64,000 nucleotides of DNA from Vitrella brassicaformis CCMP3155 (taxonomy: Eukaryota; Protista; Chromerida), in assembly GCA_001179505.1 (NCBI GenBank), contig CDMY01000260.1, positions 62,001 to 126,000 on the forward strand, given 5' to 3'. The notes beneath the pieces were generated by a model. The model saw nothing but the letters and a program-made list of their open reading frames with translations. It made no database searches and had not been told where the DNA came from. Made by a program: the position numbers and the translations under genes. Below are positions 1 through 54,440 of this stretch, one piece after another. The stretch's first letter is position 1. Every line of letters starts with the position of its first letter.

Positions 1-1129
1 TGGTGGCCAGATGGTGGTCTGCAGTCAACCGAAGAGCAAGTTCCCTCAGTGGTCATCTCGTCACTTCTGTTGCGTCTGAGTACCTGGCGGCTGAGATCGT
101 TGTTGCGTCCAATGAATCCGTCTGCTTCTCGCAACGCAGCTGACTCGTCAACCACTTGACTCTGCAGGCAGCAGGGGAAAAGACACATGGAAGAACTACG
201 CGAATTGTCGTACGTCACGTGTTGTTTCGTTTCCTACCTGCTGGTCGCTGACGCTGTCGCCTTTTCGTGGCGGTACTGGGGGAGACTCGGTGTTACCGTC
301 AGTGCTTGCCGCAGCGACAGGTGGCTCCGAAGACGGCAAAGGACCCTGAGAGGGTAAACATGAATCGTCGAAAGGCGAATCTCTCACTGCGGGCGCTCTG
401 TCTGTCTACCTGCATATCATTGGTAGTGTCAGCAAGGGATGATGCAGGTGAGGCAGACGGCCCGGGAGGATTCTGAAGAGAGAGGGGCACGCAGACAATG
501 AGGGATCGATGAACCCTGGACCTGTGGGACTGACTCGCCGTCTTCCCACCTGCTGGCATCGCTTCCTGAAGGCTTTGACCCATGACTTGGTCCCCTTGAA
601 GCCAATGATGTCCAGCCGACTGGCGATCTCCATCGCCATGGCACGGATGTCCTCTGTAGGGACACTTGTTGGGTTGTCATGGGTGGCCATCCACTGCCGC
701 ATCTCGTTCTCGATCTGCTGGTACTTGGGCGGTGTATGGCGTTTCTTGGTCGGGTCGATGAATGGCATGCCGCCCTCCCTCTGCTTCTCTTCCTGCCGCT
801 TGGCGCCTCTGAGCCAGTTTGCGAAAAGGTAGGGCGGCAAGCGCTTCTCTCTTGCGAAGTCGTCTGCTGTGATCTTCTCTCCGCTCTGCTTGCGCTGGTT
901 GAATTGTTCCACCAAGCGCAGCCGCTCTTCGATAGAGACCTCCTCTTTCCTCCGACGCATCACCTGCAGACACACAAGTGTAAGGCTTAGCCTGTTGGTT
1001 CTCAGAGCAACTGGTGTGTCGAATTGCCAGGGTTATCTGTGAGGATCGTTGACTCGTTGGTCGTGTAGACGACGGGGTTGGAGGGAGGGACCCTGCACGC
1101 CTTGCTGCACCCTGTTTGTTCGTTTGCAT
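1..1129 (-). CDS. CENP-B/pogo(Tc5)-type double HTH DNA-binding protein, multi-exon, runs off the left edge (5' end uncertain)
   Basis: Exon 550-963 (AG/GT bounded, phase 0) encodes VMRRRKEEVSIEERLRLV...FAREKRL..LFANW...PKYQQIENEMRQW...IRAMAMEIASRLDIIGFKGTKSWVKAFRKR. This matches the psq-like HTH + HTH_Tnp_Tc5 pattern (F.GS..W...F..R). Further small in-phase exons follow toward position 1. No DDE domain is visible. Confidence 0.75.
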
Positions 1130-1598
1130 CTCTTTCTGCAAACGAAAATTGCCCAGTTTGACATTGCCAAATGCCGTGTGGGAAGCCTGCTGCCTTAGAG
1201 CACCTGAACGATGGCGATCAAGTGGTCAATCACACGAGAGCTGTCATCGCCGCGTTGGGGACTCCGAGGCGCGGACGCAGCTTCAGGATGCGAGCTTGAC
1301 ATTGAATCAGAGGGGATTGAACTCAATCGAAAGAGCAGATAGCGATGCTGTAGCGGCCGCTGGCACAAGACGCTTCCACGAATCGCCCTTTCCAGCGTTT
1401 TCCGGGCCAGCTTTTCATTGGTGTTGCGGTGGCGGGACCTCGAATTACGGCCGCGACTGGACCCGCAATTACGACCACATGTCCAGTACGTCCAGCGCGT
1501 CGCGCTCTTCCGAAGCACTGAGGATCTCGGTTGGCATTCTTGCTTCCTCGTTGTTGTGTCCGTCCCTCATCGCTCTTTTCGTCTTGCACAATTGAAAG

Positions 1599-2573
1599 AT
1601 GGCGCCCATATGCTTCCGTGGCGGCCGAGGTGGTGGATCCGGCAGAGGTGGTGGCCGCGAGCAGCGTGGCCGTCAGTGCTTCGTCTGCGGGAGCGTCATG
1701 AACCAGCTGCGAAATGGCCGTCGTCGCTGCCCATACCACGACCAACACTTCGCAACGGTCTATCATCAAACACATCCCATCTACTGGACCAGCATCCATG
1801 TGGGTGATGGGTGGGTGAGGCGGGAAAGGCGAGGACGGAGGGGGGGAGGGAGGGAGGGGNNNNNNNNNNNNNNNNNNNNNNNNNNNNNNNNNNNNNNNNN
1901 NNNNNNNNNNNNNNNNNNNNNNNNNNNNNNNNNNNNNNNNNNNNNNNNNNNNNNNNNNNNNNNNNNNNNNNNNNNNNNNNNNNNNNNNNNNNNNNNNNNN
2001 NNNNNNNNNNNNNNNNNNNNNNNNNNNNNNNNNNNNNNNNNNNNNNNNNNNNNNNNNNNNNNNNNNNNNNNNNNNNNNNNNNNNNNNNNNNNNNNNNNNN
2101 NNNNNNNNNNNNNNNNNNNNNNNNNNNNNNNNNNNNNNNNNNNNNNNNNNNNNNNNNNNGGAGGGGGGGAGGGAGGGAGGGGTGTCTCACGTCATGTTGT
2201 ATGTGTGGGTGCTTCGTTCAGAATGGAGGGCGCTTCCATGCGAGCAATGACGGCTACGTCTACGCCTCGCCGACGCCAGAGGACACCTTCAACTATGCTA
2301 CCTACCAGTGAAGACCACACACAGGCACACGGAGCCTCCCGTGCGTGTGGGTGTGTCCTACATGGGTGTGTCCCTCTGTGTGTATGCAGAGGCGTCATCG
2401 TGAAGATATCCATCCGCCGGGCCCACCTTGACTTGTCTTTCAATCAGCCTGGCAAGGTGCGCTTCAGCCCCAACGTCGACTACAACATCGAGGCGTTCGC
2501 TGTCGTGACCAACCAGTGGTCCCTGCCCACTGCCCAGTGGACCAACGTGCACGTCCGCGTCAACCACGTCTGA
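1599..2573 (+). CDS. Small 3-exon protein (156 aa): RGG tract, CxxC..CxxH motif, putative ADP-ribosyltransferase-like fold
   Basis: Exons 1599-1799, 2222-2307 and 2390-2573 join in phase with GT-AG introns. Product: MAPICFRGGRGGGSGRGGGREQRGRQCFVC...CPYH...VYHQTHPIYWTSIHNGGRFHASNDGYVYASPTPEDTFNYATYQGVIVKISI...NIEAFAVV. The first intron contains an N gap. Confidence 0.6.
   Translation: MAPICFRGGRGGGSGRGGGREQRGRQCFVCGSVMNQLRNGRRRCPYHDQHFATVYHQTHPIYWTSIHVGDGWVRRERRGRRGGGREGXXXXXXXXXXXXXXXXXXXXXXXXXXXXXXXXXXXXXXXXXXXXXXXXXXXXXXXXXXXXXXXXXXXXXXXXXXXXXXXXXXXXXXXXXXXXXXXXXXXXGGGEGGRGVSRHVVCVGASFRMEGASMRAMTATSTPRRRQRTPSTMLPTSEDHTQAHGASRACGCVLHGCVPLCVCRGVIVKISIRRAHLDLSFNQPGKVRFSPNVDYNIEAFAVVTNQWSLPTAQWTNVHVRVNHV
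1860..2159. other. Assembly gap (300 N) inside an intron, flanked by G-rich tracts
   Basis: Run of n in the sequence. Confidence 0.99.
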
Positions 2574-47915: not shown

Positions 47916-50900
47916 CTACTTACTTATCGGGATAGAAGTCGTTGGTGGTGGCGTTGGAGTCGGTGCGGAAGAAGGGCGTCCCCAGGTGCGGCACCAGCCC
48001 GTCCAGCAGCACCTGCGCCAGACGCACATCCTCACACTTGAGCTCCACCTTGCACACACCTGCACACACCACACGCATCCATCCATCCATGCATCCCCTC
48101 GCAAACACAGGCCTCTCTGCTATGCGTCTGACCTGTGAGCTGCCCCGTGCCGAGCCAGCATCTCATGAGGCAGAGTGCGTCGTGTGAGCCGCCCCGCGGC
48201 CCCACGCGCAGCATGGTGAGCCGGGCGGCGGCCACCAGGGCGCCCTCTGCAAGGTGATGCTTCATACCCTCCACACGCTTGAATGCGCCGCCGTAGGTGG
48301 CATGGCGCGTCAGCTCGCCCGTGTCCTCACTCAGGGGGCGCGACAAACGGATCAGCGACTGTTGGGGAGAGAGGTGGGCAGAGAGAGGGGCATGAGAGTG
48401 TCTTCCTGCGTGTTGGTGTGTGTGGATGTGTGTCTGTGCACTTGCCTGTCGTGTTTGGAAGTTGGGGTCCCACCAGACGGCGAGGAATTGCTGTGGTGTG
48501 AGAGTGGCGGGCGAGAGGAACTTGGGCACGATGAGGGGCAGCGTGAAGTGGCTGCGGTGCACCGAGTTGTCCGACAGGTACACGTCTACCTCACACTGAC
48601 AAACAAACCATCGACACACACACACACCCACACCCACACACACGTTGTCGCAAAGACAGGCGTCCGATTGCATCTCACCCACCGTCGGCGGCACGTCGAA
48701 GAGCCCCACCATCTCTACGTGAATCGGCTGTATGTAGACACGCGCACGGCTGGCGGACGCCGCCGCGCTCCCACTCCCACTCCCACTCCCGCCGCCACTG
48801 GGCGTCCCCTCCGCCCCCGCCGTCGCCCCCTCCTTGGCTCCCTCCTTCTCCTTCTTGGTAACTATCAGCGGCGCGTGCGACATGGGCAGCAGGTGCATCA
48901 CGAGGTCTTGTCGGTCGGCGTTGGTGCACGAGAGTCGGACGGACGTGAAGCGGGTGGATGGCGCGAGTGTGGGTTTGAGGCGCAGCTCGATGGCGCCGCG
49001 GTTGCCCTCTCGTGTGGATCGGGTGAAGGACATCTGGCAGCTCACCTCTAACAGACAGACAGACAGACAGATGGGATGGGATGGGTGGAATGGAAACTAG
49101 CAAGAGATAATAGAGAGCATATTGTGTGTGTGCGGTGGGTGCGGTAGGGCGGGGGGGTGTGGTCCCGTACCTAGCATTTCGTCTCGGTAGAGGATGCCGT
49201 TGTTGGCCATGCACATCTCCCTATAACGGTCCCTGCAACACGGTGTGTGTGGATGGATGGGTGGGTGGATGTCACAGATCTTGTTTCCCCTCTGCCTACC
49301 GGTTTTGCTCCTCAATGGTCTTGTGCGCGTGAGGGGGCACAGTGAGGTCGCTCCTGATCATGGCCTCCATCGGCTTCTCGCCCGTCTCGCTCACATGCTC
49401 CAACTCCACACGCAGCCGGGCTATCTCGCTCTCGCGCTTGCGCAACAACTCAGTCAACTCACCAACACGGCTGCCACACCCACACACACACAGAGTGTGG
49501 TGTGTTGTGTGTGCGGCTGTCTCTTATGTGTGTTGCCTTGCATACACTTCTAGCGATGGCACGTCCTTCATGTCGTTCAGCAGCGACTGGTTCTCGCGAG
49601 AGAGCGATTCGATCTGGGCCGACAGGGCCGGTGAGCGGTCGGGCGGGGGCAGGGGACGCCGCGTCTGCAGACATCACACGCACACAAAGCAACAAATACT
49701 ACAGGCCGGCAAGAATGCCGAGCAGCAGGGCGAAGCGCGTTTCGCTCGTAGTCAGACAGTCAGTGTGTCTGCCGTGCCGACCACATGATCAAACTGGCAG
49801 TTGTCGAGCTGCAGGTTGTTCTGCCCGCTACTGAGTGGGAAGGGATTGCTCTCGTACAGCACACTCCACCCATCGCCGCCTCGCGACTTGCCTGACACCA
49901 AGCAAATCAAATCACCCACATGGCACACACACACGTGTGACGTGTGACGTGTGACGTGTGACGTGTGACGTGTGGCTGTGTGTTGGTGTGCCCGCACTGT
50001 CTGACATAGCCAAGCCACATACCATCGACTCGTTGCCACACAGTCAGTGTGAGGTGCGAGGCCGACTTGAGCAGCGGCTGCCACAGGTCCACACCCTGCA
50101 CCGCCAGCAGACTGTACCTGTGCTCACACACCACACACCACACACACCATACAACAATGACTAACAAGTCACAAGTGCGTAGTCCGCCCACTCACTTGAC
50201 AGTGTGCACAGCCGTCCGGCCGTCGCCTTCGTCGGCACCCCTGAACTCAGCAACGGCGGGCGGACTGTGCTCGGATGTCACCTGCTTAGGCCAGAGCAGA
50301 AGATGCACACAAAGAGAGAGATCTCCATCCATCCATCAGGGCTGGGATGGTCTTGCTGGGCTGGGCTGGTGTGTGGGGTGGGCCTGCCTGGTCGTAGGTA
50401 CCGTTTTGGTGTAGCGGACCTCCACCTGCAGCTGAGGCAGCCTGTCGGTCGAAATGCTATCGTCCGGCCCATCACCACCTATGTTATGTGCACACAAACA
50501 AGAAAACACAAGAAGCGACCAATACACACACACACACACACGCCACGCGCCTCACGCCACACCTTCTGCATCATTCATTCGTCCACCACATCACATCACA
50601 CACGTGCTTCTACAGCTTTCTACCTTTGGTACTGCTCTCCTTGCGCCTATCCTCGCGCCCGCCCGTCAGGTGCTTCACCATCGGCAGGCCAAACCGGTCA
50701 GGCGCCCGGCTGCCCCGCCCCTTGGTGGTGCTCTCGTCATCGCGCCAAAAGCGGGAAGGGCTCGGCAGCCACTGCTCGCCCAGGAAGGTCTCCTCACCCC
50801 AGATCTCCACCAGCAAAGGCGTGGCAGGGGTGGCCAAGACGGCCATGAGCTCGTCGATGAGCCGGGCGGTCTCTGCCTCCTTGTGTGCAAGTTTGTGCTG

Positions 50901-51514
50901 GATGGCCACGAGCTGTGCGGTGGGCTGGCCGCTGGATTTGAGGAGCTCCTGCATCTGCGACTCGTAGAGGTCCTGCTGCTGCTGGAGGGAGGTCTGGAGC
51001 TCCTTGATCTGGTCATCCTTGGCCGGGAGCTGCTGCTTGAGCCGGTCCAGCTGCTGCTGCAGCGCCTCACGGTTGGCCTGGTGCTCCGTCGCTGCCGCAT
51101 TGGCGCTGCACACACACAAAGAACACACACACATACACAGAGAGCGTGTGATGTCATCTGATGTGTGTAAGTGTTTTCCTGCAGGATGAGCCCTCACTCA
51201 TTTCGCTCTACGATGATCTTGTTGAGTTCGCTGGTGGCCCTCTCGGCCTCCCCTTTCTGCTCCTCGACCTCTTTCTGGGCCTTCGCCACCGCCTTCCGGC
51301 CGCGGGAACGGGACTGCAACGAGCCAACACACACAGGCACTGCACTGCAGATGGCGGCCATGTGTTGCATGCCTACGGGCCTATCTACCGAGCAGTAACA
51401 GAAGAGTGAGAGCAGCCACAGGAGGAGGAACACGGCTCCCCCGATGGCGCACCACAGCCAGAGGTCGAGGCCCAGGAAGTCGGTTTCGTTGTCCACGCCG
51501 AACAACGACGCCAT
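47916..51514 (-). CDS. TM + coiled coil + C2-like + coiled coil + AP-2 alpha-adaptin appendage (ear) protein
   Basis: Exons join in phase from MASLFG...LWLWCAIGGAVFLLLWLLSLFCYC through LLVEIWGEETFLGEQWLP to CMANNGILYRDEMLEVSCQM..NRGAIELRL and FTLPLIVPKFLSPATLTPQQFLAVW, ending FYPDK*. Confidence 0.7.
49933..49973. repeat. 7-bp tandem repeat (CGTGTGA)n in an intron
   Basis: cgtgtga repeated about 5 times. Confidence 0.9.
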
Positions 51515-51744
51515 TGGCCTCACTGCCAGCCACAACTGGAAACACCAGGGTTTGGGTAGCAGGGTTTTCTACCCTAAACCCTAAGCCCTACGGCTCGTCC
51601 TACACAATAGCCAAGAAATCAAGGGTCCAAGAAATCAAGGAGCTGAGCTCTGCAAGGAGGGGTTTTGATGGTGGCGCCCTTCCGTCGGCCGAGAGAGCAA
51701 GCGACAGTCCCTTGAAGCATAGCGACGTCAGGCAGTGAAGTGGG

Positions 51745-54440
51745 ATGGACCCGTCCGGCAGCAAGCGCGTAAGTACAACACTGTTGTGTGACACTGTTAC
51801 TGACCTTTCCTTTCTCGCCGCTGTTTGTTTCTGTGCAGGGCGCTGTGTCGCACCCGGACGGGCCGAGAACTCAGAAGAAGCCCCGGGCGGACACCCCGTC
51901 AGCAGCGGCAGCAGCAGCAGCAGTCAGCGCCAGTGCCCATGATCCCATCATATTCCCCTTCCCAGTCTCAGTTCCGCCCATTTCCCGTCCCCCTGCTCTG
52001 GCCGCTTCCCATTACCCGCCCTGGTCCGCACACCCTCTGCAGCCCATCTTCCAGTCCGCCGAGACAAGGGCAGCGGCCGGTGTTGGCGCGTCGCCCGGCG
52101 TCCCTCGCTGCAGCCCCTTGCCGACTTTGCCACTTCCTCAGTTGAGTCTCCGCGAGTCCATCATGGCCATGCCCCTAGGGCCTGCCTTGAGGCGTGCACC
52201 AGCCATCTTCCACCTCAACCCACGGCCGGAGAAGCACGTGCCTCTCACGGCCGAGGGAGTGGAGGTGATGGCCAAGAGACTGCAGGTGGCGAATGCGTTG
52301 GTGTGCCAGCAGGGCATGGAATGGAACAGCAGTCAACTGCAGTGGGTGGTGGAGGCCGAGGTGCGGCTGGGAGGTGCCCACACGGCGCCCTTCAAGGTCA
52401 CAGAGCCGTTTGCGCCGGCTCGGTACACCTACGAGGGCATCTTCAGCGCCCTCACCAAGGCGTGGGAGTTCAAGTGGCGGCTGCAGCAGCAGTTCAAGCT
52501 GTCTCCCTCTGCGATCCTCGAAACCCTCAGTCGAGCGGCATTCCCTCCCCAATCCCTCACCCAACGCGACGGCAGCACCACCACGCAGCAGCAAGGCGGC
52601 CCCGCACCACCACCACCACGACCCAGAATCAGCCCTGCCCCTGAGGAGCATCGTCACGAGCCCGCGGACGCCAGTCCCCAACAGGAGCACGCCGAGAGTG
52701 TGAGCGTGGGGGCCGTGACGGACGCGGCACCTGCGGGCGGGGCACCTGCAGCTGAGCAGCCGTGTGACGAGAGGCAGTTGGTCGACAAGCTGATGTCTCT
52801 TCTCCCCCCCTCACTCAACTGTGTCAAGACTCACATCAAGCCTCTGTGGGCTGGCACGTGGCAGGGCCTCCGGCTGACGGGCTTCGTCGCCTCGTTTGTG
52901 CCAAACGGCGGTGACCGGCCGGGGCAAGGGCAGCGTCTGGAGCTGAGGGTGCCTGTGGAGCGTGACGGCCAGCGGCCTCTGAGGCAGGCAGTGGCCATCG
53001 CCCTCGTCGAAGCGGCAAAGTGGCGTTTCAGGATGGGCATCGCTGCTCAGGAGGAGGAGGGGATGGCCAGCGAGGAGGAGACCGACCAGCTCAGAGCATT
53101 TGGAGCACTTGCCGAGAACTTCAAGCAGCCTGCACCAGACAGACAGCAAACCGAGTCGGCAAACGGCAATCGCGAAGATGCGGCAACCGACGAGAGCACC
53201 CCCGTTTCCCTCACGCCGCCCGCTCTCCCTGAGCGCGACGCGGGCAACGGCAACCAACAGATGCTAGAGGCACCACGACAGACTGCGGAGGCTCCCTCTC
53301 CTTCGGGTCTTCACCCGAGCCCACCAGCCATCCCGGTTGCCCCTCCGTCTCCCGAGCAACACCCACCACGAGCCATCCTGCCAGCAACCGTCAAGCAGGA
53401 GGTCAGCGGCACGGCAGAGAGACGGAATGTCACGGCCGAGTCGCCGCCAGAGGCCCCCCCAAAGACGAAGGAGGGCGAGGGCGTTGCCATCGTGGGTGTG
53501 GTCAAGGCTGAGGGAGAGGAGGAGGGCAAGGCAGCTGCAGCCGCTGCGAGTGCCGCGGGGGGCCCATCGGATAGCAGGGGCAAGGACAGGGGCAGCCCTG
53601 CCGCTCTGCCGGGTGTGCCGGCCGCGGAGGGGGCCAACGACGAGGGACGGCCCCAGGTGGCGCTGAGCGACCTGACGACAGAGCATCTGATCCAGCTGAT
53701 GAGCGCCCTCCCTCAGCCCGGCCTTCGCCAACTCGCGAAGCGATGCCAAGAGGTCAGTTAGCGACGTCTGCACACACACATCACACCGTCCAGCGTCCAG
53801 TGCGTGTGTTTTCTGTTTGTCTGCTCAGTCGGTCGAGCGGTTCAATTTGGTGCCGTTCGCGACGTTCGCCGACCTGGAGAAGCTGGTCCACGACCCGGCA
53901 GAGAGGGAGGACCTGCTGGCAGAGCTGCCGATGTCCGAGTGCACCCTCTTCATGCTGCAGCGCTTGGTCAAGACACTCAAGGACAGGGCGGCAGCCAATG
54001 GGGGGCGTGTGGCGTCGCCTGTGTGCGGCGAGGGGGCCGGTGGTGGGCGTGTGGAGGGGCTGGATAGCGAGGGAGTGGCGTTGCTGCTCGAGCAGAAGAT
54101 AGTGAATGCGGATATGAAGCCACGACTATTCATCCTCGTAGCACAAATCCGAGAGGTGGGTGGGGAAAACGCAACGCAGGCAGCCATGGATGGATGGATG
54201 GATGCATGGATTGGCTTCCTTTCTCTTTTCCCCCACCCCCGGGGTCAGCATTGCATCCCCGGCAGTGTGCTGAGATGCCTGTGTGCCCGGACCACTGACA
54301 TCTGTGGCGAGGAGGGGGAGTGGGTGCAGCAGCTGACGGGCAAGCTGCAGCCGAGGTGGGACATACGGCTGAAGCGAGTAGTGCGGGAGACCCTGCTAGC
54401 GGCAGACAGAGAGGAGGGGGGCAAGGTGGAGGGTGAGTAG
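51745..54440 (+). CDS. Hypothetical protein with a divergent ApiAP2-like segment
   Basis: Long exon with GMEWNSSQLQWVVEAEVRLGG....FKV...TYEGIFSALTKAWEFKWRL (G..W....W.V...F.V...A...A pattern), Pro/Ala-rich linkers and a helical C-terminus ending KVEGE*. Confidence 0.45.

Follow-up and report, generated by a model that had tools for sequence, protein, structure and literature searches.

Can a membrane protein carry the ear of AP-2 alpha-adaptin without the adaptin trunk, and if so, at which membrane would such an ear work? The question is raised by a minus-strand gene at positions 51514–47920 of a 64,000-nucleotide stretch of the genome of Vitrella brassicaformis CCMP3155 (assembly GCA_001179505.1, contig CDMY01000260.1, positions 62,001–126,000 of the forward strand). 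This whole stretch was analyzed and is called the window; positions are given in its numbering. Myzozoans, which comprise apicomplexan parasites, chromerids, and dinoflagellates, take up material via stable micropores. These are organized around Kelch13, the protein responsible for artemisinin resistance, and ear proteins without a trunk have assumed the functions of the AP-2 alpha ear in this group.

The gene consists of 14 exons with 774 codons and a stop, and its splice phases agree across all 13 introns. The in-frame translation of each exon is found unaltered and in collinear order in the public protein CEL98002.1 (UniRef A0A0G4EM02, 774 amino acids, Vitrella brassicaformis CCMP3155, annotated as uncharacterized), with zero or one split-codon residue between the pieces, indicating that CEL98002.1 is the spliced product. 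An original prediction, made from the DNA letters, had traced the splice phases in frame from the ATG at 51514 into the exon coding for the ear, and the 14-exon model and the exact match to CEL98002.1 bear this out. The product is confirmed to be a single-pass membrane protein with a cytosolic tail that ends in an alpha ear and lacks an adaptin trunk. The protein itself was already public without annotation, and only its reading is new: the layout of an ear anchored by a transmembrane (TM) helix is conserved from chrompodellids to coccidia, with the residues of the ligand pocket intact throughout the family.

The C-terminal domain and its ligand pocket

The structure of the protein was predicted using AlphaFold2 (AF2) with a family alignment of ten sequences. 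The C-terminal domain, formed by residues 472–757, has values of the predicted local distance difference test (pLDDT) mostly in the range of 75–91, and is broken by a disordered Gly/Ser/Ala loop of residues 545–581 that is specific to Vitrella. In a Foldseek search of the PDB, the top eight matches are all AP-2 alpha appendages, with expectation values (E) from 4e-15 to 5e-13 and target template modeling scores of 0.78–0.85, followed by gamma-COP and beta2 appendages with E of about 1e-7 to 1e-6 and scores of about 0.45–0.49. VIA-align, which searched 48,161 representative chains independently of Foldseek, places 1w80_A first, with a Z-score of 24.6 and a root-mean-square deviation of 2.6 Å over 237 of 248 residues, aligning residues 455–754 of the model to residues 696–938 of the chain. 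The runners-up are the beta2 appendage (Z 14.3), gamma-COP (13.8), and the gamma2 ear (10.8). The sandwich of the ear also matches gamma-ear/GAE sandwiches in structure searches. In the ESM Atlas, the nearest neighbors of the protein are alpha-ear clusters, both by sequence features and by structure.

The sequence of the domain points to the same type of appendage. When the family profile was compared with all PDB sequences, the seven best matches were alpha appendages only, collinear and with E values of 0.004–0.07. The aligned stretches are the beginning of the sandwich, with NNG[VI]L[FY], and its final strands, continuing via LPxxxxKFxxP to the platform Trp. The Vitrella NNGILY aligns with NNGVLF of the solved alpha ears, and KNNGVLFENQLL is among the aligned appendage stretches. 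The two parallels to alpha-adaptin quoted in the original prediction are thus real, being aligned by the profile to solved alpha appendages. BLASTP against the platform exon of the canonical Vitrella AP-2 alpha, which reads FTLPVCLTKFFSPASLSAEQFTSYW, gives 52% identity over 25 residues with an E of 3e-6. The C-terminal domain, residues 455–757, is a complete AP-2 alpha-type appendage, as judged from its predicted fold and from a profile match that is weak but specific. The full appendage that had been proposed is reproduced in the AF2 model and in the Foldseek and VIA-align comparisons as a sandwich followed by a platform.

The appendage of AP-2 alpha itself (1w80, 1b9k, 1qtp) shares with the Vitrella domain the bilobal fold, the NNG[VI]L[FY] start, the LPxxxxKFxxP linker, and the platform Trp. 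However, sequence identity is only about 17–19%, and the Vitrella protein differs in lacking a trunk and hinge, in having its own TM anchor, and in not being a member of a heterotetramer. The Adaptin_N trunk (PF01602) has no match in CEL98002.1. Scans of the whole 72.7-Mb Vitrella assembly of 1064 contigs, which was also the scope of the other whole-genome searches, gave 25 matches to PF01602, none of them on this contig (C260). The canonical Vitrella AP-2 alpha, with Adaptin_N, Alpha_adaptinC2, and Alpha_adaptin_C in order, is encoded on another contig (Table 1).

Trp840 of AP-2 alpha is the center of the platform site that binds DPF and FxDxF ligands (PMC5694535). Its counterpart in the family profile is Trp644 of the Vitrella protein, which is invariant in ten of ten family sequences, as are Arg719 and Lys732. 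The alignment suggests that a platform ligand pocket centered on this Trp is conserved across the family.

Membrane anchor, helical segments, and middle region

The N-terminus of the protein was previously proposed to contain a TM helix with juxtamembrane Cys. The helix is the only strongly hydrophobic segment of the protein, and Cys39 and Cys41, followed by a basic flank, are present at its end; both cysteines are candidates for palmitoylation. Residues 1–17 form an acidic stub with an N-x-T sequon, whereas the SRSRGRK sequence comes after the TM helix, so that the flanking charges are −4 on the N-terminal side and +5 on the C-terminal side. According to the positive-inside rule, the basic flank of a TM helix faces the cytosol. 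The order of acidic stub, one TM helix, and basic cluster therefore places the bulk of the protein in the cytosol. The TM helix and the charge asymmetry are kept in all six full-length sequences that retain the N-terminus, those from Vitrella, Digyalum, Colpodella, Besnoitia, Cystoisospora, and Eimeria.

Two coiled-coil segments had been expected, and AF2 predicts long helices in both places, within residues 17–171 and 377–469. The latter region includes a further helix of residues 451–469 that leads into the ear. Matches of the protein to Pfam models of the coiled-coil type are weak ones only.

The region between the two helical segments is rich in beta-strands. The strands that had been described as C2-like are present in the AF2 prediction, but the C2 fold is not confirmed: the models are of low confidence, and neither exon-by-exon nor full-length scans of the middle region gave a match to C2 or another Pfam domain. 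Fold searches with the full model are dominated by the ear and the helices rather than by the middle region. The equivalent region of the Besnoitia relative, which is encoded mostly by one exon, was folded alone and reached a mean pLDDT of 44, too poor for a fold search. The Vitrella middle region contains the family signature LLVEIW ... FLGEQWLP, which is conserved in all full-length relatives in the alignment. The middle region is a conserved module, predicted to be beta-rich, for which the modeling neither supports nor excludes the C2 label.

Relatives and the likely site of action

CEL98002.1 was reached by exhaustive phmmer with an open frame of 354 codons from the locus (48035–49096, minus strand) as the query, which returned seven representatives. 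Word-indexed searches with the Besnoitia ear, the Digyalum ear, and a Neospora fragment gave coccidian relatives only, or nothing. The relatives have in common the order of N-terminal TM helix, basic cluster, helix, LLxEIW...FxGEQWLP, variable region, and ear. A model from Eimeria flavescens (916 amino acids) and fragments from Neospora and Eimeria acervulina lack the N-terminal part. Conservation in the family is highest in the ear, and outside it the region of FxGEQWLP ranks among the best conserved. The combination of TM anchor, coiled coils, and alpha ear is thus conserved from the free-living Vitrella and Colpodella to coccidian parasites. No paper was found in a literature search on the accessions of the Vitrella protein and the Besnoitia orthologue. 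The gene of the latter (locus L018, CM008349.1:2686414-2692975) has four coding exons compared to the 14 in Vitrella, and its product contains a low-complexity insert of about 200 residues between the LLAEIW strand and FVGEQWLP.

Ear proteins without a trunk have already been described as KAE/KIC4 and KIC5, a point that the original prediction missed, along with the TM segment and SMC-like coiled coil reported for PfKIC5. In Plasmodium, KIC5 and the KAE homologue KIC4 belong to the K13 compartment, and their ears were found only by structure prediction (PMC10718435). PfKIC5 (PF3D7_1138700) contains a sandwich of the alpha/beta/gamma-appendage type and an alpha-adaptin platform, without Adaptin_N (PMC10718435). 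According to a second report, KIC5 is also predicted to contain a region resembling SMC/Rad50, a TM segment, and an N-terminal basic nuclear localization signal (NLS) (PMC9829687). The published description of KIC5 and the Vitrella protein therefore have three elements in common: a trunk-less alpha ear, a TM segment, and an SMC-like coiled coil. The juxtamembrane basic cluster of the family could well score as an NLS like that predicted in KIC5. On this comparison, we consider the Vitrella family to be the probable counterpart of Plasmodium KIC5, with a probability of about 0.6.

If the Vitrella family is the counterpart of KIC5, the position taken in the literature that homologues of KIC5 are confined to Plasmodium would have to be revised, also with respect to Toxoplasma. 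The literature reports no homologue identified in Toxoplasma, whereas the Vitrella family was found in Besnoitia, Neospora, Cystoisospora, and Eimeria, and the reported lack may reflect divergence rather than absence. KIC5 would then be read as a membrane-anchored ear platform and not as a nuclear protein, and the relatives would offer tractable systems for studying what keeps accessory proteins at a fixed site of endocytosis.

Several results weigh against this assignment. The ear had been called established, which stands by predicted structure and the profile match but not at the level of Pfam: Alpha_adaptinC2 (PF02883) and Alpha_adaptin_C (PF02296) have no match in the exons at E up to 10 or in seven full-length family proteins at E up to 1, and the open 354-codon frame has no Pfam match to an ear, C2, or trunk domain. 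Whole-genome scans with PF02883 and PF02296 matched other loci and not this one. Because no Pfam ear model reaches the reported threshold, the link to the ear is weak at the level of sequence. Arg719 and Lys732 would correspond to Arg905 and Arg916 of the mouse ear, a tentative placement based on the end points of the structural alignment. No member of the family was retrieved from Toxoplasma, Plasmodium, dinoflagellates, or metagenomes, an absence that is weakly supported owing to the length windows and word filters of the searches. A metagenome scan with the family alignment found nothing, and an ESM Atlas search among unnamed clusters gave no KIC5-like cluster. No Plasmodium protein was retrieved, and the argument for homology to KIC5 is one of architecture. 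The KIC5 description used for the comparison does not give the position of the TM segment or the order of domains, and the likeness is one of a list of elements. Finally, the disruption of KIC5 caused no endocytosis defect in trophozoites (PMC10718435).

The other described ear protein is a less suitable counterpart. TgKAE (TGME49_272600) is trunk-less, with a C-terminal ear of the alpha type and coiled-coil motifs, occurs across Myzozoa, and is located at the K13 micropore complex (PMC10105704). Binding of its ear to Eps15L depends on WxxF, whereas the AP-2 alpha ear of myzozoans is reported to be degenerate and without Eps15L binding (PMC10105704). The C-terminal alpha-type ear without a trunk and the coiled coil are found in KAE/KIC4 as in the Vitrella protein. 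However, KAE has 1672 residues, an ear annotated as "adaptin C-terminal domain", and no described TM anchor, in contrast to the 774 residues, the TM anchor, and the absence of a Pfam-level ear in the Vitrella protein. KIC4 contains VHS and GAT domains, whereas the Vitrella protein has a TM anchor and no Pfam match to an ear, VHS, or GAT. KAE was not retrieved among the relatives, although its length is within the search range. A second alpha-type ear locus is present at the end of another Vitrella contig (C943), with family-profile matches to the sandwich start, LPxxxxKF, and CLxRxxLGTG, and is a candidate for a KAE/KIC4-type gene. The differences in size, Pfam-level ear, and TM anchor, the failure to retrieve KAE, and the separate ear locus on C943 make it unlikely that the protein belongs to KAE.

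Tentatively, the family may be orthologous to neither KIC5 nor KAE and represent a third, unrecognized alpha-ear lineage in chrompodellids and apicomplexans. Its members would then be candidates for the integral-membrane anchor, so far missing, by which the myzozoan micropore is kept stable and in place as an endocytic site.

As in AP-2, the ear may act as a hub that gathers accessory proteins, for instance those resembling Eps15, through their short aromatic motifs. It would bring proteins with DPF/DPW, FxDxF, and perhaps WxxF motifs to one fixed site on the membrane. The ear would be tied directly to the membrane and would probably be multivalent through pairing of the coiled coils, which would make it a stationary platform for recruitment, in contrast to an adaptor that is soluble and cycles. 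As a KIC5 counterpart, the protein would act at an endocytic structure of the micropore or cytostome type in myzozoans. Judging from the literature on KAE, KIC4, and KIC5, the Kelch13 micropore is the most likely site of action. The original prediction had also suggested a micropore component with an ear of the kind that recruits Eps15, a role that would follow by analogy with TgKAE/PfKIC4 and PfKIC5.

It is rather unlikely that the ear is genuine but serves another membrane step, such as a Golgi- or endosome-like step or one at the alveolar inner membrane complex, with lineage-specific partners outside the Kelch13/micropore machinery. The appendage fold is used at other membranes, as the structure-search matches to AP-1, GGA, COPI, and BBSome subunits illustrate, and homology to K13-compartment proteins was not demonstrated in the searches. 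However, the fold of the Vitrella ear is of the alpha type and not of the beta, gamma, or COPI type (Z 24.6 versus 14.3 or less), the Trp of the alpha platform is conserved, and the known trunk-less alpha ears of myzozoans, KAE/KIC4 and KIC5, are K13-compartment proteins (PMC10105704, PMC10718435).

We regard it as improbable that the ear is a degenerate remnant without motif binding and that the function of the protein is in the coiled coils and the FxGEQWLP module. The ear has diverged beyond the reach of Pfam models, the conservation of the FxGEQWLP region is second to few outside the ear, and the degeneration reported for the myzozoan AP-2 alpha ear offers a precedent. Nevertheless, the ear is the part conserved best, and Trp644, Arg719, and Lys732 do not vary across chrompodellids and apicomplexans, the pattern expected from selection on a binding site. 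The fusion of two neighboring genes in the model, one for the TM helix and coiled coil and one for the ear, or an ear similarity due to chance or modeling, is largely refuted: no Vitrella transcript was found by exact-protein look-up and the structure model is based on ten sequences only, but the splice phases agree through all introns, complete transcriptome open reading frames (ORFs) from Colpodella and Digyalum join the TM part to the ear in one message, which argues against a split into two genes and upholds the single gene originally proposed, gene models in three coccidian genera keep the same N-to-C layout, and four different methods (family profile, Foldseek, ESM Atlas, and VIA-align) agree on the ear.

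Gene structure and neighborhood

The splice sites are of the GT-AG type except for one GC-AG intron (intron 12, donor GCAAGT). The need for the second of two adjacent GT donors at one junction, which had been foreseen, applies to exon 8, whose donor is at 49545-49544. Exon 7 has alternative in-frame donors; the public protein ends the exon at 49782 and an independent model at 49785, and the resulting one residue is the sole difference between the two. A whole-genome search with CEL98002.1 located all 14 exons at this locus only, with nothing credible elsewhere. A match on contig C40 (E 0.2) that might have indicated a paralogue was judged on inspection to be due to chance. The gene appears to be single-copy, because the Colpodella homologue used as a query also matched only this locus in the Vitrella genome.

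Table 1 Positions of the gene features in the window, related loci, and lengths of the full-length relatives
Feature	Position or length	Strand	Basis
Exons 1–7	51514-51389, 51313-51198, 51105-50624, 50478-50402, 50281-50196, 50117-50023, 49891-49782	-	splice phases and exact match to CEL98002.1
Exons 8–14	49664-49546, 49470-49300, 49232-49171, 49047-48683, 48595-48446, 48358-48133, 48059-47920	-	splice phases and exact match to CEL98002.1
TM helix, residues ~18–41, with Cys39 and Cys41 at the cytosolic end	51392-51463	-	best 19-residue Kyte-Doolittle window 20–38 (2.29)
First helical/coiled-coil stalk, residues 42–171, interrupted by intron 2	50835-51313	-	AF2 helices 17–138 and 144–171
Beta-rich middle region, residues ~176–345, exons 3–7	49839-50822	-	AF2: about seven strands between 178 and 341, pLDDT ~50–74
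Second helical/coiled-coil segment, residues 377–431, exons 8–9	49389-49628	-	AF2 helix 377–431
Lead-in helix (455–469) and predicted beta-sandwich subdomain (~470–625), exons 9–12	48530-49319	-	AF2 strands 472–621, pLDDT mostly 73–91 outside the loop
Predicted alpha/beta platform subdomain, residues 626–757, exons 12–14	47974-48529	-	pLDDT mostly 75–91 except one short loop
Trp644 codon	48473-48475	-	aligns with Trp840 of AP-2 alpha (HMMER family profile versus 1w80/1b9k; chain numbering)
Telomere-type repeat TTAGGGTTTAGGG	51572-51584	-	58–70 nt upstream of the ATG; 1 match in the window versus 0.01 expected
Second alpha-type ear locus (L003)	G000:C943 ~460-1750	-	three collinear exon-sized family-profile matches and PF02883; no Adaptin_N on the contig
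Canonical Vitrella AP-2 alpha (L001, L004)	G000:C989:189348-193862	+	Adaptin_N, Alpha_adaptinC2, Alpha_adaptin_C in order
Digyalum oweni relative	817 amino acids		complete transcriptome ORF
Colpodella angusta relative	1008 amino acids		complete transcriptome ORF
Besnoitia besnoiti BESB_054960	1008 amino acids		gene model
Cystoisospora suis relative	874 amino acids		gene model
Eimeria stiedai relative	1292 amino acids		gene model

The introns are short (67–145 nt), and most are rich in GT/CA microsatellites and short tandem repeats, as exemplified by the repeated CACACGT unit in intron 6 (49935-49975). Introns 11 (48596-48682) and 12 (48359-48445) are each 87 nt long, in frame, and free of stops, so that the frame stays open over the 354 codons used as the search query. 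Retaining either of these introns would add 29 residues to the ear and not truncate it.

A divergent ORF of 657 codons on the plus strand (51788-53761) has no Pfam match and is separated from the ATG by a gap of about 270 nt. The telomere-type repeat TTAGGGTTTAGGG is positioned in this gap and may be a promoter element, perhaps of a bidirectional promoter, or an element of the 5′ untranslated region.

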